A model generated the notes under the pieces. The model saw only the letters and a program-made list of their open reading frames with translations, made no database searches and was not told where the DNA came from. A stretch of 63,965 nt of DNA, counting the filler, from Octopus bimaculoides (Eukaryota): the NCBI RefSeq assembly GCF_001194135.2. It is 7 parts of 7 records of this genome, joined end to end, with 100 filler letters (N's around TTAATTAATTAA, not from the genome) between each part and the next. Parts side by side here need not be neighbours in the genome. Positions count along the whole stretch, not along the records: positions 18,476 to 30,694 come from NC_069000.1; 6 more parts are not named here. One strand, 5' to 3'. The first letter of the stretch is position 1. The number at the start of each line of letters is the position of its first letter. Positions 18,476-30,694 of the stretch are shown here, piece after piece. Position numbers and translations under genes: made by a program.

Positions 18476-18520
<45 letters not shown>

Positions 18521-18940
18521 GACATACACTTTCTGGGGACTGTGTGCCAGGTCGTACAAGAGGAGGTGTTGGGCGACCGGAGGGTTGAGGTTATGTAGGA
18601 AAGATTAGAACACTTAACGACCGGATGGCATGCTGAAACGACGGCGGGACATCACCTCCACCATAGGGTTTGTCAGAATATAGGTCTGTTATTTTTAGGG
18701 TCTCATGTACAACATTGTATAAATAACCAAATTATACGCACGCACGCACACGCACACACACACACAGGCTCACATATACACACGATCACATTGAAGAACG
18801 TGACATTAATACATAGTAGAATATATGTAATATAAACATATATAGGATATTATACACGCAAGCACGTAATCACATGTACATATATATATATACATATACC
18901 ATACACACACATAATGTATATATATATATATATATATATA

Positions 18941-18974
<34 letters not shown>

Positions 18975-19168
18975 CACACATAATTAAAGAGTTAACGATT
19001 CACCGCTGTTTAATTATAAATACCAACTTTATATAACCAGTTGAGTGGTCTGTCCTTTGCACGCAACAACGCGCGCGCTGCGTGTATTTGCACGCGCGCG
19101 CGCACACACACACACATATATAAATCCATATATAAGTATATATATATATGCATATGCACCCATATATG

Positions 19169-19211
<43 letters not shown>

Positions 19212-19828
19212 NNNNNNNNNNGATAGATAGATAGATAGATAGATAGATAGGATAAATAAAACAAAGAGGATAAATAAAACTGAATCCATGAATAAATATA
19301 ATTTATTATCTTTAATCGGTAGATCTTCCAAGGTGGCTCAAAGGACTCATTAAAAGTACACCACACACATTCGCACGCACGCACACACACACACACACAC
19401 ATACGCACGCACATTAAATGTTATGAAGGTTCACCGAGGTGCTTCCCTGACAATCAGATAAATCAGGACGGCGAAACTATAAAGTCATCCGCACCATCTA
19501 TTATATAGAATCTATTTACTTGACTCTGTCTTTCGTGTTGAGCACTCTATGAGTTAAAGATCTATCAAAAATTCATATATACTAAAAACCGCAGCGAAAA
19601 TCAGGCTATCTTTTCCACATTGCATTGTAGTTCAACTTGTTTAAGGTTTCGCGGAATAGGATCGAATCTAAAATCTCGTTATTCGGGAGAGAACATATTA
19701 AACGCATAGCGTTGGTGTGTGTTAAGAGGGAATATCGGCTGCTTCTTCTGGCAGATTCGGAAGACTATGTAGATACTCTTTCAATTAATGATAGAACGGA
19801 TGACGACGACGACGACGACGACGACGAC

Positions 19829-19896
<68 letters not shown>

Positions 19897-20447
19897 NNNN
19901 NNNNNNNNNNNNNNNNNNNNNNNNNNNNNNNNNNNNNNNNNNNNNNNNNNNNNNNNNNNNNNNNNNNNNNNNNNNNNNNNNNNNNNNNNNNNNNNNNNNN
20001 NNNNNNNNNNNNNNNNNNNNNNNNNNNNNNNNNNNNNNNNNNNNNNNNNNNNNNNNNNNNNNNNNNNNNNNNNNNNNNNNNNNNNNNNNNNNNNNNNNNN
20101 NNNNNNNNNNNNNNNNNNNNNNNNNNNNNNNNNNNNNNNNNNNNNNNNNNNNNNNNNNNNNNNNNNNNNNNNNNNNNNNNNNNNNNNNNNNNNNNNNNNN
20201 NNNNNNNNNNNNNNNNNNNNNNNNNNNNNNNNNNNNNNNNNNNNNNNNNNNNNNNNNNNNNNNNNNNNNNNNNNNNNNNNNNNNNNNNNNNNNNNNNNNN
20301 NNNNNNNNNNNNNNNNNNNNNNNGATATCTAAACAAAATGTACAGGAGATCGATTCCCAGCAGGGTCATTGTTACTTCTTTTTTTTTATTTTAGGTGTGT
20401 GTCTGTGTGTCCCCCACATGTGTACGAGAATGAGAATGCGTGTGTTG

Positions 20448-20486
<39 letters not shown>

Positions 20487-20640
20487 TTTGTGTGTGTGTG
20501 TATGTGTGTGTGTGTGTGTTTGCAAATGGGTGGAAGTGTATGTTCTCGTGTAAAAATGTGTCGCTTACACATCGCCCTCACACACATCTGCAACCATATA
20601 TACGCATACACGCGCACACAGACTCCTATTACAGCATACC

Positions 20641-20688
<48 letters not shown>

Positions 20689-20862
20689 TGCACACATATA
20701 CACATACATACATAGAGAACTCCACCTACACACTCAGACACGCGGACAGAAGCGGCAGGTTTATGGCTGTCTAAACCTCCAGGGACATATCTATTAACAC
20801 CAATGAGCAGTAAATGAAAATAAAATGTGTGTATATAGCGTGTGTGTGTGTGTTTGTGTGAG

Positions 20863-20895
<33 letters not shown>

Positions 20896-20948
20896 CTGCG
20901 TGTGTGTTTGTGTGTTTGTGTGTGTTTGTGTGTGTTTGTGTGTGTGTT

Positions 20949-21010
<62 letters not shown>

Positions 21011-21049
21011 TAGATATATCTATCTATCTATATATATATAGAGAGAGAG

Positions 21050-21105
<56 letters not shown>

Positions 21106-21594
21106 GTGGTAGAAAGAGAGACAGACAGACATAGATAGTCAGGCATAAGTGAGAAGAAAAGAGATAGGAGAGAGAGAGAGGCAAAGATAACTTGTGGGAA
21201 AGAGACAGACAGATAGAGAGAGAGAGAGAGATGGGGAGAGAGAGAGATGGGGAGAGAGAGAGAGAGAGAGAGTAGTGGTGGTGGGTAGGGATAACGAGTG
21301 GAAACGTGTGTGTGGGGGGAGAATAATTGTTTACAACTTTACGCTCCATTAACCAATTGGTCGAGATGATATTTAAAACATTGAAGTGTTGTTGGTGTTG
21401 CGGTGGTGGTAGCAGAGATGGTGGTGATGAACGTGATGGTAGTGGTGTTGGTNNNNNNNNNNNNNNNNNNNNNNNNNNNNNNNNNNNNNNNNNNNNNNNN
21501 NNNNNNNNNNNNNNNNNNNNNNNNNNNNNNNNNNNNNNNNNNNNNNNNNNNNNNNNNNNNNNNNNNNNNNNNNNNNNNNNNNNNNNNNNNNNNN

Positions 21595-21653
<59 letters not shown>

Positions 21654-22419
21654 TACACATATATATGAGTTCATATACAACTAGACTCAACAACGCTATC
21701 TCATTTGCGACTGAGTAAACTGAAGCAATGGGAAATAACGTGCTTTGCTCAAGAACACAACTCAACGCTCGATCCGGGAATCGAAACTTAGACCATGCGA
21801 TCATGAGTGCAACGCCTTAAGCCACGCATCTTCACATAGCGAAATTATATCTAAGTGTTCAATTCCTGGTCTGCGTCCTTATCACAGATGCAGGGACCCT
21901 AGATGAAAATATATATTTTTCTATATCTCTATTTCATCTCTTCAAATGAGTAAAGAGAGAAGTGTGAACGGGTGTAGTTTCATTGAAGCAAGTAAAAGAA
22001 AAAAAATCATAATTTATGACGAACTCGAACTCAGGAACTCGTGATTCTCGCCTAAATGACTGTTCAAATATCAAAGTGACCTTTCACATTCCGATTACCC
22101 TGTCAAATGCAATCCTTATTTATTCCCATTGTTTGGAATTAATCACGCATTATCTCGTAGCTTTGAGATTTCAATGATGTGATTATTTTTAGAATGACAC
22201 TGTAGAGTAAGTGTAAGAGACCGGATCTGACCGATTTGAACATAAAGCAGGCTGAATATTTGAGCCTGATATGGACCGGTTTAAATGCTAAAGGGTTAAA
22301 TTCGGTTTGCTTCGTTATACATTAAATCCCCTCTGAGAGGAATGAAAAACCAAGTCGAGCCTGGTTCGAATTCAAAAACTGGAGAATGAAAACTAAACTC
22401 TGCATTTAAAGATAGGTGC

Positions 22420-23280
22420 AGCGCCTGAAATTTGAGGGAGGATATCATCGTTCCAGGGAATGACTGGAATTTTATTTTATCGATCCTGGAGGATTAAAAG
22501 ACAAAATCGATTGCTGTAGGATTTGAATTCAGGACGCAAAAAGCTGAAACAAATATCATGAGTTTTTGTTTTCACCCCACCCCCGTCTCAGATGTTCTAG
22601 CGATTCTGCCAGCTCGCTGCGTCAAGGAAACGAAACTTAGTCCATCGTCTTAACTACTCGTCTGCGATGACTAAGTCTAAGAATTCGTTCTAGCGTAAGC
22701 ACAAGGCCTGAAATTTTGAGGGGAAGGGGACGATTACATTTGTACTTTTATTTTTCATCGACCTCGTAAGAATAAAATGCAAAGTCGGCTTTAGTGAAAT
22801 TTGAACTCAAAGCATAAAGCCGGAAGAAAAGCCGCTAAGCACTTTGTCCGGTACATTAACAATTAACAACCCGAGGCCAGCAATCTAGAAGAGGTGGGGT
22901 TAATCGATACTATTGACCCCAGAACTTAACTGGTACATTATTTTATCCACCCTGAAAAAATGAAGAGAAGAGTTGACTTCGGTGGGATTTGAACACAGAA
23001 CATAAAGTCGGGAGAAATACTGCTAAGCATTTTGTCCGACGCACTAACGATTCTACCAATCCACAACAACAATAATAATCCTTTCACAAGGCCTGAAATT
23101 TTGGTGGGAGGGACTAGTCGATCATATCGACCCCAGTGATCGATTGGTACTTCTTTTATCGACCTCGAAAGGATGAAAAGTAAAGTCGATCACCATGGAA
23201 TTTGAATTCAGCCGTAAAGCCGGACGAAATGCCGCTAAGCATTTTCTCCGGTGCACTTACGATTCTGTCAGCTCACAACC
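22420..23280 (-). mobile_element. Head-to-tail array of 4 Nin-type SINE copies
   Basis: Four successive units of about 200 bp, each with G(A)ATTTGAA(C/T)(T/A)CA and CTAAGCA..TT.TCCG motifs. Confidence 0.75.
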
Positions 23281-23764
23281 TTCGCCTTAATAATAAAATG
23301 ACGATAATTTGTTTCTAACATGTGTAATGTTGGGAAAACAGGGTAAAATCGGTACGAATCTACCCCAGAATGGTGAAAGGAAAAATTGTTTCTTGTAAAA
23401 TTCGAACTTACAACGTTAAAAAGTGAGACTTTACACTATAATACGATCGATTTTGCCATTCACGAATCTACTTAAATAACATTCACAACTGTGACAACAA
23501 CACTAACAAGACAATATAGTGAATTTAAATGCAAATTGGAACGAGAAGCTCAACCATAATATGTGTATGTCAATATTTATTTCAACACACATATATGTGC
23601 GTGTATACATATTTGTGTATGTATGTGTGTAGGTGTGAGCGAGAGAGGGAGAGAGAGATTAAAAGAAAAATTATAAATAAGAAGCAAAATAGTACAATAT
23701 GTTTTTTCAAAGTCGCATTCCATGACAGGGAAATAAACTGAAATCGAAGTTTGTGTATGGAATC

Positions 23765-24409
23765 ATGTCAGCTCTTTTAAGAAATACCACCCTAAACCAT
23801 CGACTGGAAGTGACTGTTCAACCGAAATACTTCGAAGAGGCTCTATTATGTCTTGTGGAATCAATTATATACATAAGAAGTAAAGGGAGAGTGTTACGGG
23901 ATGCAAAACATGTTTATCGCGAAGGCACGAAGAAAACTGCCATGAAGTACTGCACTTCATTTAGTCTGCAATATTCTTGTAATGAATCGAGTGAACTTCA
24001 GAGCAGAATTCTAAACCAAATCCAAAGAGTTCGGTGGCTTTGCTGCATAGAAGGACAAAATGCTAATTGCAGTTTGAGCATGAAATTCTACAAGAATTTC
24101 GTCAGTCCAACTCAATTTAGCAGTGCTCTGCAAATTTTTGAAACATGGCAGATTCGCATTCGGATAGTGACTTTCACAGAGGTGGGACATGCCCAAAACC
24201 AAGTACAGGAAATGGTAAATACTTTAACGAACTGTATATCTTATATCCATGAATGCAAATTTTCCATTTCCCCTTTATCGAACATTAATACTTTTGAAGA
24301 TTTGTTCAGTTTTCTTGACTTGGTATCCTTCTCTGATGTTTCGTTGTATCATTTCTTCTTTGATCTTAATTTCCAAAATTCTGATGAAGATGAAAGTGTT
24401 TCGCAATAA
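23765..24409 (+). CDS. ATG101: ATG101-like HORMA-domain protein, 214 aa, single coding exon, divergent
   Basis: Uninterrupted ORF from ATG 23765 to TAA 24409 (the track starts it at GTG 23753). Ungapped blocks match human ATG101 as recalled: [28 protein letters not shown] vs [41 protein letters not shown] vs [21 protein letters not shown] vs [39 protein letters not shown] vs [40 protein letters not shown] vs LRDVQPYLY. Length is close to ATG101 (218 aa). Orthologue versus paralogue is not established. Confidence 0.85.
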   Translation: [214 protein letters not shown]

Positions 24410-24454
24410 AATGATTTCTTTGAAGTTTCGGTTTTTCATTTTATTATTTTGACA

Positions 24455-24650
24455 TGTGGATTTGCAGAATCGTTAGAGCGTCAGAATAAAACGGTCTTGT
24501 AGTTTGTTTTTCGATTCGCTACGTTCTGAGTTCAAATCCTGCAGATGTAACCTTTCGAGATCGTCAAAATAAGTACCAGTAAAGTTAGTGCGGTCGATGC
24601 AATAGGCTTGCCTCTCCCCTAAAAATTACTGGCATTGTAGTAAAATTAGA
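24455..24650 (+). mobile_element. Diverged Nin-type SINE just downstream of the ATG101-like stop codon
   Basis: GCAGAATCGTTAGAGCGTC...ACGTTCTGAGTTCAAATCC...AAAATAAGTACCAGT. Confidence 0.7.
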
Positions 24651-25029
24651 ATTTTTTTCATTAATTTATTTAACGGTTATATTTCCAAAAATATTTCATT
24701 TCTGTTAAGATTATAATTATTTTTATGTCATTTTTAATATTTCAAAAGGAAAACGGTGGTTTCCAGAATCCGATAGAGTAACCTTAATTTATTTTGCTAC
24801 ATTCGTTTCTTTCGCGTTCAAGACTATCCAAAGGTAATATTTATTTTTCCTCCATCCTAGGATCGAAATAATAATGTTTTAAATCGATTGCATCTCTGCA
24901 CCTAAAATTATTGTCTGTCTTCTAAATTTAGAAATACCCACTTTTTCTTAAAGAGATTAAATATGACATTTTTGTTGTGCAATACTGATTTCTATTCTAG
25001 ACTTAAGTATTATCGCAAGTTCTAACATT

Positions 25030-25260
25030 CCCGGGGTCGGTACCCGGTTTCCACGGCCTCTAAGTGAACGATATCACACCATTCACCCTGATCGGAAGAC
25101 TAGTCCGTCGCGAGGTTGCTCGTTTACAGTCGAGTGGACTGGAGCAATGTGAAATGAAGTGTCTTGCTCAAAAACATAACGCACCACTCGGTCTAGGAAT
25201 GGAAACCACAATCTTAAGATCGTAAGTGCAATACCCGAACCGTTAGCCCAGGTACCTTCA
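25030..25260 (-). mobile_element. Third tRNA-derived SINE family (V-domain-like). Partial copies at 21690-21830, 29985-30100 and 58790-58925
   Basis: Minus strand reads TTGAGCAAGACACTTCATTTCACATTGCTCCAGTCCACTCG.CTGTAAA...CCTCGCGACGGACTAG. Confidence 0.6.
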
Positions 25261-25309
25261 CGACTTATACCTAAGGTCGCTAATATGATCTGTGTGGAGT
25301 GAAATACTT

Positions 25310-25570
25310 TTGTACTCTAGGCACAAGTACGCAACTGGTACTTAATTTATCAACCCCGAAAGGATGAAAGGCAAAGTCGACCTCGGCGTAATTTGAACTC
25401 AGAACGTAATAAACCTATATTCTTTTCTACTTTAGGTACAAGGCCCGAAATTTGGGGGGAGGCGGGGCAGTCGATTAGATCGACACCAGTACGCAACTGG
25501 TATTTAATTTATCGACCCCGAAATGGTAAAGTCAAAGTTGACCTCGGCGTAATTTGAACTCAGAACGAAC
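25310..25570 (-). mobile_element. Nin-type SINE partial copies. Further copies: 26005-26210 (+), 27690-28060 (-), 33895-34105 (-), 38515-38720 (+), 51380-51540 (+), 57935-58125 (-), 59340-59730 (-)
   Basis: Same diagnostic motifs as the 3075-3290 copy. Confidence 0.75.
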
Positions 25571-28389
25571 AGGACAAGTTATTACACTTGGAAAAGTTCA
25601 GGACAAATTATTACATCTGGTAAAAGCACAGAACAAGAAAATTTTTACTTAAAATATTGCAGCTGAGGATAAATTTTGAAATAAAAGATTTAGATTTAGA
25701 AAATATTAGTTTTTATTAAAACTAAAAATTTTATTAGTCTTGACCAAATGCCTATTTCTTTTACATAATGAATTTACCTACCATATATTCTATTTTACTT
25801 TGCATTAAACTTTAGCTATAATGGTACTTCTGGCTCTCATTTTTCAAGTATTCTAGTGTGTCAATATTTTATGCATATATATATACACACATGCACACAT
25901 GCACAACCTCCCTAAACTAGAAACCTTTATCCAAATATAACCCTTGCCATAATTAAACTCTCAATGAGGGACAATTACACAATATTAATGCATCGTATTA
26001 TCTCAGCAGACAAGCGAAGGTGGTGAACTGGCAGAACCGGTTGCGCGTCCATTAAAATGCTTTGCGACATTTCGGCCGCTTTTTTTTTTTTTTTCCTTAA
26101 ATTCTGAGTTCAAATTCCGCCGAGGTCGACGTTAACTTTCATCCTTTTAGTTTCAGCAAAATAAATACCAGTTAAACCCCGGGGTCGGTGTAATCGACTT
26201 ACCTTCTTTCACTAAAACAACCATAAACCCAAAAGCCCTAAATATGTTGAACCCTTACCCCACCCACTCTTATAAGTGTGTGGACTCTTCCAACTTAATA
26301 AATCGAGAATTCCAAACAGCTGAAAGTAAAAATGAGGATGCAATCATCTAAAGCCGCGATTTTTAAGTTCAAACTCTGCCGAAGTCAATTAAATTATGTT
26401 CTGCCCNNNNNNNNNNNNNNNNNNNNNNNNNNNNNNNNNNNNNNNNNNNNNNNNNNNNNNNNNNNNNNNNNNNNNNNNNNNNNNNNNNNNNNNNNNNNNN
26501 NNNNNNNNNNNNNNNNNGTAACAGTAGAATGATATTTGATCTCTACACAAAGTTTGTTATATTAAGGGAAGAAAGAAACAGGATATGTTGAAAATTGTTA
26601 TGTTTCTTTTTCCTACGGTCATTAAAGTCCTTAATTAAAATGAGTTTGTGAAACCAGGCGGCTAAATTTTCATATTAAGAATAGATTTCCTGCCCTAAAC
26701 TACGAAAAGCTCGCTTCCTTTTAAGAATACTCTTCAAGCAATAAGATATATGATGGCTCTTTTATTGACGCGCAGTATAAAGGTTAACCAGACTCGGAAA
26801 CGTTTATTCCCTTCAAAAGGGACATTAGGGACTTCTTTTTGTAAGGGCTTGGTCTGCAGAGTAGGGGCCATGTCAATGAATTGTTTCCTGGGCCTCCGTA
26901 ATGTGGGGCGGAAGTTTTCTTGAAACCAGCGATTTGGCCCCAGTATTTGTAGCAGTGTGAGTTCTATTAAATACATCGAAGTTCGATACGGGGGAATTAA
27001 ATCGGGCGACATTTGAAGTCTGTTGTCCTCAGCAGAACAGAAATGATCCTCTCTACGGACGACTTCCACAGTTTCTGTTTACTAAATTTCGTTCAAGTTT
27101 TTGTCGATGCGAGGCGAAAGAAGATATTTGCACGACGTACAATTGGATTGAAACAAAATTAGTGTATTGTATTTGACGGCATATAAGATGCGCCTTCCCG
27201 CCCAAGGCCAAGTCAGGGAAGATGTGGGGGCATGCACCGCTGCAACACGTTGCAGCTCGTTGCTATCATTCACCATTTGTCAGTATATTTCCAGGTCCAC
27301 TCGGAGACCCGCAGGGCAGATTGCCAATTGGTCCCCATCTCCTCATCTACTGTATCCATGTGGCATGCGGTTGACCAACACAAGCAATCAACCTATCAGG
27401 ATCCTCAGAGAAGAGAACCCTAAGCAGGATCTAACTCGGAAAATTGAGCAACATGGCCAGACAACCTGAGCTGGCGCACATGAATCATGCAAGTAACAGG
27501 ACGCATCCGATCAATTGGAACTCATAATACTACGAAACGCTCTGGTATCAAAGGAGTTCAGATGGCTCCTAAGTGCTCCGGACCTAAGAGTATCTTGATG
27601 TAAGACAAAGACCCAGTCCTTCCTCCACCGAAAAAGGAAATTCACTGCTGTATAAACAAATGCATAAATGGTTCCTCATTCATGCATGAGGCCTGCGGCC
27701 TTGAGGGGAAGGGCTTAATCGAGCTATCGACACTCGTACTTGAATAGTACTTTATTTTATCGACCTCGAAAGAATGAAATGCAAGGTTGACTTTAGCGGA
27801 GTTTGAACTGAGAACCAAAGAAGCCGCAACTAAATACCACCAAGCATTTTAACCGATGCTCTACTGATTCTGGCAAAACACCGCTCTTGATGTCAATGTA
27901 TGCACAAAGCCATCAGTTTTAGGGGAGTAAATAACATCGATCCCAATACTTAACTGGTACTTTATTTTATCGTCCCCTAAAAGGTTGAAAGGAAAAGCTG
28001 ACCTCAGTTAGACTTGAACACAAAACGTAGAGTTTGTCCGATCTTCTAACGATTCTACCTTTGTTCTAAACATCTTTCCAAACAAGGGCTCTTTTGCCGT
28101 GTATAATATCAAGGCCAGATTAAGGACCCGTGGTGAGGTTTTGTTATCAGTATGTAAACTCCATGACGCTGTTTCAATTCCTCGCTGGAACTAATCTTAT
28201 CAATGCTTTTATTAGATAAAGAACTTAATAAATGTGTTTATTACATACCCAGCGGAGAGTGGGGAGGGACCAGGAAGTGTGTTACCACAGTGAAATGCCG
28301 CGTAGCGACTGAGAGAGTTCGTTCTTTATTAGACGCATGACAACTCAATACAGATGTTTACATATCCACACATATAAGTGTGAGTATAT

Positions 28390-28459
<70 letters not shown>

Positions 28460-28855
28460 TTATATATATATATACACATACTCGCACATATACATACACA
28501 CACAAATACATACACATATACGTAGAGGAATAATTGCACACGAGAGTGGTAAATATGGAAATATTTAAGTGTGTGTGTGTGTTTATACGTGTCACTTTGC
28601 ACTCATTAACCAATTAACAAAAAACAATTAAGTTTTTAAGCTGAAATTTTACATTAATTACAATAGTGTACTCGTCTGACCATGGCTTACACTTAACTGT
28701 ACTTAAAGAATGGTGGCATAATGTATGTATGTATGTATGTATGTGCGTGTCTGTGTGCGTATGTGGATCGACACACATGTATGTACATATGTGTGTGTAT
28801 ATGTGTATATATGCACACGCGCGCACGCGCACGCGCGCGCACGCGCGCGCGCGCG

Positions 28856-28952
<97 letters not shown>

Positions 28953-29675
28953 TTGTGTGAATTTGTTTATGAATGTTTCTAAAGATTATATTAAATTAAC
29001 TGAAAACTACCCAAACGACCCATTTTTAATTCATCCACCATCCAAACATCTCCATTGTATTTTTGTATTCTTTTTAAACAAAAATCCCCGGCAGATCTTT
29101 GGACGTTAGTTTATAAAGTGTCTTCGGTAAATAATAACATTAAAGATCAATAAAAATGTATATTGGAATATATTTTTGACGCTCGGCAGGTTACCCAGGA
29201 GGCCCTGGGAATATACCGACAAATGATGAATGCGGCAATGCGCATGCCTCAAACACCTGGCCTATTTCCTGGCAAGACATAGAGAGAGGGCATTCAGCAG
29301 TCTTGTGTTTCTTTTCTTTTGCTTTTTTTTTTCTTAAACATTATACTCTATATAATCTATAATGCTGCTTTAAGATCTCCTTTAAAAAAAGTTAGATTAA
29401 TAAACCATGTATCAACGGCTTAAAACATAATTTCAATACTTTACATGCCAGACTCGAGTTCTTTATACACACATCCATCATATGTGTGTACGTGTACATA
29501 TATATATATATGTGTGTGTATGTGTGTGTGTGTAATGTATATGTATGTATTTATAGTGACATAGTCCTCGCAGGGAGAACACCTGTGTGTTAAGATGTAG
29601 AATTAATAGTATCTGTAAAGGTGTGGTGGTTTATCGTTTTAAGGCGTTTCTACACCGATAACCAGCATGTGCCCC

Positions 29676-29746
<71 letters not shown>

Positions 29747-30112
29747 ATACACATAAATACGCTATAGGTAAATATGAACACAGACTAGCAAGCACGCATG
29801 TTATACAGTTAGATGTGCGTGATTTTGTGTGTGTGTGTGTGTGTGCATTCATTTAACAAATGTCCGCATATTACGGCTGCTCTCTCTTTCTCTCTCTCTC
29901 CTTTTCTCCCTCTCTCTCTCTCTCACAATCTCTGAATACTCACCCTTCATGAGAAACACTAGAATCACTGCGAGTTCTGATGCTGGAGCAACGTAAAATG
30001 AAGTATTTTGCTCAAGAGCACAACGCACCGCCCGGTCTGGGAATCGAACTCCCGATCATGCGATCGAGAATGCAACACTCTAACCACTAGGCCACGTACC
30101 TTTATTTATATA

Positions 30113-30230
<118 letters not shown>

Positions 30231-30606
30231 CGTTTATATGTGTATGTAGGCATACATGAGTATATGAACACACACATACAGTTACGCATACGCACTCACA
30301 CACGCACGCATGCATGTTTGTGTGTATATGTCCTTATAAAGAGAAATCCATTTATTCATGGCCTCGGTCTCGCTTTAAAAGAAAGAATCTCTGCGTTATC
30401 TTCGGGTGTCAGATCGAATTACAGGATGTCTATCTCTGTTTATACATTCTTAGTCAGTGTTTGCTTCTGTATAAGTGTGTGTGCATGCAAGGGTATATGT
30501 GTGTGTTTATATGTATGTTCTTATTTGTGTATATATATTGATAATGTATATATGCCTGAATATATGTAAACGTTAGCACCAATACACGTATGCATTAATA
30601 TACACA

Positions 30607-30694
<88 letters not shown>

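Follow-up and report, generated by a model that had tools for sequence, protein, structure and literature searches.

ATG101 is an open-type HORMA protein, locked by a short β5–αC loop (5 residues in Atg101), that stabilises ATG13 and recruits downstream factors through its WF finger (PMC4824606). In human ATG101, the WF finger and, at the C terminus, the amphipathic helix characteristic of the canonical protein (human G201–L218) are both membrane-inserting (10.1101/2025.11.07.687251). Atg101 conserves both finger residues, Trp and Phe (PMC4824606), unlike the octopus protein described here. ATG101 is among the most conserved of the autophagy-initiation proteins: molluscan classes are 67–81% identical to one another, whereas the coleoid gene evolves at a dN/dS of about 0.5. 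Our references for the human protein were Q9BSB4 and structures 4WZG, 5C50, 5XUY and 8DO8. Fission-yeast Atg101 (4YK8), the HORMA partner of Atg13, is also a structural match of the octopus protein (E = 8e-07), although a far weaker one than human ATG101.

Divergent ATG101 homologues with altered fingers are found in insects, such as KAJ9577477.1 from Diploptera punctata (P0007, finger VPF) and XP_058053470.1 from Anopheles bellator/cruzii (P0013/P0019, finger WSY), and divergent copies may be recurrent in animals. Unlike the coleoid proteins, however, these homologues are far less divergent and keep a C-terminal extension, and they are not specifically allied to the coleoid clade.

Here we describe a coleoid ATG101-derived HORMA gene, which is a variant of a known family and not a system of a new kind. 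A long-lived natural ATG101 that has the HORMA core minus the two membrane-inserting elements amounts to a separation-of-function variant, and could reveal the activity of the HORMA core by itself, be it stabilising ATG13, competing for ATG13 or binding new partners.

A single-exon ATG101-like gene in coleoids

The gene lies in the piece spanning positions 18476–30694 of the window (the whole 63,965-nt stretch of Octopus bimaculoides DNA analysed; Table 1). This piece is AT-rich eukaryotic DNA with many microsatellites and assembly gaps, and the gene is its sole convincing coding feature; the remaining ORFs of at least 60 aa are simple-repeat translations or have no Pfam match. The frame opens with the ATG at 23765 and closes with the TAA at 24407–24409, giving 214 codons without stop or frameshift, which confirms the intact 214-aa ORF claimed in an earlier note on this DNA. 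An in-frame stop stands upstream at 23735–23737. In the third Octopus species, and in that species only, an upstream in-frame ATG adds 21 codons (L002 340–402, SRR11869390); the true start is probably the conserved ATG, in the context AATCATGTCA, rather than this upstream one. The AATAAA hexamer at the end of the frame is shared by all three Octopus species and absent in Argonauta and cuttlefish; possibly it serves as a poly(A) signal, in which case the 3′ UTR would be very short. Scans of the locus for bacterial-type promoters and terminators and for tRNAs were irrelevant to eukaryotic DNA or empty.

Table 1. Features of the ATG101-like locus, in window positions
Feature	Position	Strand	Remarks
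ATG101-like HORMA CDS, single exon	23765..24409	+	ORF, Pfam, PDB sequence matches, AF2/Foldseek, O. sinensis orthologue
Helix A and R-S-x-G-K loop, residues 20–42, including Y36/I37	23822..23890	+	best-conserved coleoid block
β4–β5 loop, WF-finger equivalent, residues 113–120	24101..24124	+	W-P-F replaced by T-Q-F
C-terminal acidic tail	24374..24406	+	stands where the canonical C-terminal helix would be
AATAAA hexamer, possible polyadenylation signal	24405..24410	+	read from sequence; overlaps TAA stop
Dispersed repeat of ~190 bp, outside the gene	24441..24638	+	30 nt past the stop; in all three Octopus species
Inverted copy of the ~190-bp repeat	22985–23172	inverted	72–74% identical; ~590 bp upstream of the start

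The proposal that the product is an ATG101-type HORMA protein is genuine by sequence, profile and structure comparison. First, the product scores 35.9 bits (E = 8.2e-09, residues 15–163) with the Pfam family ATG101 (PF07855), for which the gathering cut-off is 26.5, and this is the only Pfam family to exceed its own cut-off. Second, phmmer against PDB sequences returned human ATG101 chains only (E about 1e-06), residues 13–144 of the octopus protein aligning without a gap with residues 7–138 of human ATG101. Identity in this block is 31/132 (23.5%), ranging from 10 to 40% in 20-residue blocks, close to the roughly 25–30% in the best blocks that had been estimated for an ungapped alignment. Third, hhalign, run on profiles of the coleoid family and molluscan ATG101, gave a probability of 97.2% (E = 3.5e-11, 187 columns, 19% identity), a profile–profile likeness that is far beyond chance. 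In length (214 versus 218 aa) and in collinearity over residues 10–205, the octopus protein also follows canonical metazoan ATG101.

The predicted structure leads to the same family. An AF2 model computed from a mixed alignment (pLDDT 88.4, pTM 0.86) has human ATG101 as its top PDB matches in Foldseek (E about 1e-17, TM about 0.8). Since that alignment included canonical ATG101s, we repeated the prediction with only the 7 divergent coleoid sequences; pLDDT was then 69.2 and ATG101 was again the top Foldseek match (E = 1e-13, TM 0.63–0.73). In the AF2 model, β5 ends at residue 134 and αC begins at 140, leaving a β5–αC loop of 5 residues (135–139). The octopus protein is thereby predicted to keep an ATG101-type open HORMA core with a short β5–αC loop.

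The earlier note had taken the gene for a lineage-specific paralogue; it is no recent octopus novelty but belongs to an old lineage common to Octopus, Argonauta and cuttlefish. A word-indexed search found the O. sinensis protein annotated as ‘autophagy-related protein 101-like’ (P0001, VCDQ01008190.1), which is 84% identical to the window product, and a protein from a third Octopus species (runs SRR11869390 and SRR11869394), which is 76% identical; no relatives of at least 90% identity were found in the 15-billion-protein collection. Three further distant clusters, all scoring well above canonical ATG101s, came from an exhaustive HMMER search of 1.84 billion cluster representatives: the 207-aa Argonauta hians protein GAB1601838.1, a 216-aa group and, with a frameshift, a relative of the 216-aa group. 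The 216-aa protein is present in run ERR12945500, which the Sepia officinalis genome paper identifies as reads of the cuttlefish Acanthosepion esculentum (PMC13218726). Identity between the Octopus, Argonauta and cuttlefish lineages is 35–39% (37% for Argonauta versus the octopus copy).

Because copies occur in Octopus, Argonauta and cuttlefish, the gene lineage is, on this distribution, at least as old as the octopod–cuttlefish split. Over ~9 kb the window and the O. sinensis contig are collinear, with 88–93% nucleotide identity, so the two loci are orthologous. Comparison of the Octopus flanks with those of Argonauta and cuttlefish revealed no synteny, the matches being limited to the CDS and repeats. 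The O. sinensis and Argonauta copies, both single-exon members of the lineage, are orthologues or close co-orthologues of the window gene. We found no literature linking ATG101 or ATG13 to octopus or other cephalopods, and no papers naming the run accessions other than ERR12945500; the coleoid gene is so far recorded by automatic annotation only, and we found no literature on it.

A decapodiform-like relative of the cuttlefish copy lies at 10001–10669 of a long-read metagenome contig (L005; ENA ERZ21867824, contig ctg94170l). It is intact apart from an in-frame 6-bp deletion and a 1-bp insertion, the latter within a run of T near codon 113; the insertion is either a homopolymer or assembly error or a very recent disablement.

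The ORF is contiguous at the window, O. sinensis, Argonauta and cuttlefish loci, whereas in the scallop Pecten maximus canonical ATG101 is spread over about 8 coding exons (about 7 introns) across 5 kb. Because the coleoid copies are intronless where the normal gene of the family has introns, which is the pattern by which retrogenes are recognised, the coleoid gene most likely arose as a retrocopy, derived from spliced ATG101 mRNA earlier than the octopod–cuttlefish split. No A-tract follows the ORF and no direct repeats flank it as remnants of a poly(A) tail or of target-site duplication; at such an age, erosion of both is expected.

Surfaces kept, rewritten and missing

Comparison with the 75 near-invariant columns of canonical ATG101 (at least 95% in metazoan ATG101) shows 13 to be kept and 39 to be changed in all six coleoid copies, whose full-length identity to ATG101 is 19–23% in a collinear alignment. 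The residues retained are, in human numbering, E19, R32, G35, C57, Y64, S69, L72, F102, E120, W122, L148, D179 and D184; these 13 and the ATG101-like predicted fold support the view that the HORMA core is preserved. At 22 positions, the coleoid copies are invariant yet unlike the canonical consensus, as in E32 for H26, W91 for D85 and H196 for L189.

The earlier note had three interaction surfaces lost from this protein. Two of these, the WF finger and the helix at the C terminus, are indeed absent; the third, around L30/H31, is rewritten but conserved. The mapping of L30/H31 to Y36/I37 was exact. However, the block that holds these residues has not decayed and is the best conserved in the family, with 12/23 residues identical in Octopus, Argonauta and cuttlefish compared with 48/214 (22%) over the whole protein. 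It reads CLVE(S/T)I..IRS in coleoids versus ..FHT.L.HR. in canonical ATG101, and the canonical invariants H26 and H31 have become E and I/V, respectively, in all six coleoid copies. Even between the Argonauta and L005 copies, the block is still alignable at the nucleotide level, with 78% identity. Because 12 of 23 residues are identical across lineages that share only 22% overall, the comparison points to a helix-A/loop surface that is rewritten yet constrained, not lost.

This block, conserved within coleoids and different from the canonical one, is the candidate ATG13 interface. Because the helix-A invariants are altered (H26 to E and H31 to I/V), an unchanged ATG13 would not necessarily be bound. 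Published contact residues for ATG101 on the ATG13 side are I131, R133, V134 and Y138 (PMC6070014); in the searchable literature, we found no support for L30/H31 as ATG13 contacts.

The other two surfaces bear no such mark of constraint. Human W110-P111-F112 is replaced by T116-Q117-F118 at nt 24110–24118 (ACTCAATTT), exactly as first noticed, and the Trp is missing from every coleoid copy (T/T/T/S/D/D in the six), so that the equivalent tripeptide is T-Q-F in the window, S-K-F in Argonauta and D-Y-V in cuttlefish. None of the 8 residues of the finger loop is conserved over the three lineages, the cuttlefish loop is 4 residues longer, and the AF2 pLDDT falls to 71 in residues 113–120. The replacement of the C-terminal helix by an acidic tail was also described correctly: the canonical C terminus SVGTTMRK(L/F)(L/I)KDTLAL is absent, and every coleoid copy terminates before that segment. 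The tail has 0/11 residues conserved among lineages, is acidic in Octopus, and is modelled with pLDDT below 50 at residues 210–214.

Extra copy or sole ATG101

Because the WF finger is missing along with the C-terminal helix and the core is kept, we infer a HORMA subunit that is deficient in membrane anchoring. The octopus protein would be a conserved HORMA-pairing subunit incapable of membrane anchoring; should ATG13 be its partner, it would stabilise or sequester that protein and not aid recruitment. The partner would then be held in a stable but recruitment-poor state, which would make the protein a subunit that tunes or buffers the initiation of autophagy. The divergent protein would act beside canonical ATG101, which is an assumption, there being no canonical cephalopod protein among the matches listed. 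Taken as a whole, this reading, of a functional, single-exon, divergent ATG101 retrogene encoding a HORMA-pairing, non-anchoring tuning subunit beside canonical ATG101, has in our judgement an even chance of being right.

Whether the gene is a second ATG101 bears directly on this. The claim of a second paralogue in the earlier note stands as regards an ATG101-type protein; as regards ‘second’, no canonical cephalopod ATG101 appeared among the best 120 of 453 matches to human ATG101 or the best 120 of 840 matches to a 10-mollusc profile. Vertebrates, insects and cnidarian-like sequences are present among the matches listed. Unnamed top matches in 20 clusters, placed by their identity to named sequences, were tube worms, Paralvinella, Mytilus, a tick and anonymous singletons.

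These results would also suit a different, less likely history, in which the gene is the sole coleoid ATG101: the retrocopy would have displaced its multi-exon parent before the octopod–cuttlefish split and then evolved fast, and its product would still pair with and stabilise ATG13, with membrane recruitment of the ULK complex achieved by other means. In addition to the lack of any cephalopod among the matches listed and the resolution of unnamed top matches into annelids, mussels and ticks, the collection does include annotated O. sinensis and A. hians proteins (the source of the divergent copies), and the gene is conserved across coleoids with a strongly constrained helix-A block. Against this, cluster representatives can conceal named members, and a moderately divergent canonical cephalopod gene could fall outside the matches listed; heterobranch gastropod names, too, are absent from the matches listed in both searches. 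Further, a sole essential gene would not usually have shed 39/75 metazoan-invariant positions, the functionally essential WF finger and also the C-terminal helix while evolving at a dN/dS of 0.4–0.8. Because the loss of the WF finger and of half of the invariants at a dN/dS of ~0.5 ill fits a sole essential gene, we favour an extra copy beside canonical ATG101, which we regard as probable, and consider displacement of the parent gene unlikely.

The two histories differ in what they would mean. As an extra copy, the gene would exemplify an ancient retrogene that was kept, probably as a regulator. If it is the sole cephalopod ATG101, a major animal group would have a rewired autophagy-initiation complex, in which ATG13 stabilisation and ULK-complex membrane recruitment would be organised unlike in every other animal studied.

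Two mollusc-like singletons (P0166 and P0169) are among the matches listed in the canonical searches. Another match, P0018 (runs ERR3510665-79), is divergent, with about 45% identity to all canonical ATG101s (42% to scallop ATG101), and contains WPF. It was considered as a divergent cephalopod ATG101 and rejected, as it has neither repeats in common with cephalopod loci nor an excess of derived residues in common with the coleoid clade.

Old retrogenes frequently gain new roles, and the protein might have been neofunctionalised outside the ULK complex, its rewritten, conserved helix-A surface binding a new partner in, for example, a tissue-restricted or germ-line process. The 22 coleoid-invariant positions that differ from the canonical consensus fit such a role, as do the unconstrained WF loop and tail. 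By contrast, the protein has gained no domain, and its closest relatives in structure and in sequence are ATG101 only. We consider this proposal unlikely, a little more so than a sole coleoid ATG101, and retain that of a tuning subunit beside the canonical protein.

Selection on the frame and genomic surroundings

The suggestion that the gene is kept under selection holds: the frame is maintained across lineages with a dN/dS of 0.2–0.8, although constraint is weak. Between pairs, dN/dS is below 1 in all six comparisons, at 0.38–0.81 within Octopus, depending on pair and method, and 0.22–0.32 between two cuttlefish species. Synonymous sites are changed more often than nonsynonymous sites in three Octopus pairs (Fisher test, p 0.0004–0.016). 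When the window is aligned with O. sinensis, 0 indels fall in the CDS, compared with 14 gap openings in 2090 bp of flank, and the two CDS indels of the third Octopus species are both in frame. In simulations, a stop-free frame survived 55, 93 and 125 random substitutions with frequencies of 0.08, 0.02 and 0.007, respectively. Open frames of 207–216 codons are kept across lineages that are 35–39% identical. Together, these comparisons argue that purifying selection, weak but real, maintains the frame.

A neutrally decaying processed pseudogene, with a frame left open by chance, is correspondingly very improbable. What favours it, apart from the L005 insertion, concerns recent divergence and transcription: the CDS of the window is 91.5% identical to that of O. 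sinensis, compared with 92.7% and 91.0% in the flanks, and differences fall at 21, 14 and 20 sites by codon position, a skew that is not significant. Because the CDS is no better conserved than its flanks and the codon positions differ so little, recent constraint in Octopus is weak. No trustworthy evidence of transcription was found in the Logan contigs carrying the gene. We rejected these contigs as transcripts: they are genome-collinear, with an A-rich low-complexity tract at the start and repeats at the end. Run ERR12945500 was also set aside as RNA evidence, as it served a genome depth-of-coverage analysis (PMC13218726), suggesting genomic DNA reads. The earlier note had named a dN/dS near 1, lack of expression and disablements in sister species as the signature of a young pseudogene; dN/dS is below 1 in all six comparisons. 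The L005 1-bp insertion could be taken as a sign of decay, but the contig is from a long-read metagenome, the insertion falls within a run of T and the remaining frame is intact. Frames of 207–216 codons in lineages 35–39% identical would be impossible without selection on the coding frame, and because they persist a neutral pseudogene is excluded; frame conservation, dN/dS and the indel pattern largely refute it.

That the protein belongs to another HORMA family (Mad2, Rev7, p31comet or HORMAD) and merely resembles ATG101 can be dismissed as next to impossible by the Pfam, Foldseek and hhalign results: low identity to ATG101 is all that favours it, whereas the alignment to ATG101 is collinear over its full length, ATG101 leads in both Pfam and Foldseek, and in Foldseek human ATG101 is followed by fission-yeast Atg101, with Mad2 (E = 2e-04 or worse) and Rev7 (3e-02) far behind.

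The gene is bracketed by inverted copies of a ~190-bp repeat (Table 1). Because the O. sinensis locus has several copies, the repeat is probably a common SINE-like element that brackets the gene by chance. Elsewhere in the piece, short assembly gaps and microsatellites predominate in the flanks, the latter being (GAT)22, (GT)n, (AG)n, (CA)n and (TA)n at 19829–19896, 20440–21272, 28391–28949 and 30143–30227, and most of the long ORFs of the piece are translations of such repeats. Runs of N, marking short assembly gaps, occur near 19212–19225, 19897–20300, 21450–21590 and 26407–26515. The segment at 26518–27506 is relatively GC-rich (0.42–0.47) and 92% identical to O. sinensis, with several ORFs of 60–110 aa on both strands, none of them matching Pfam, and may represent either conserved non-coding DNA or an old repeat.
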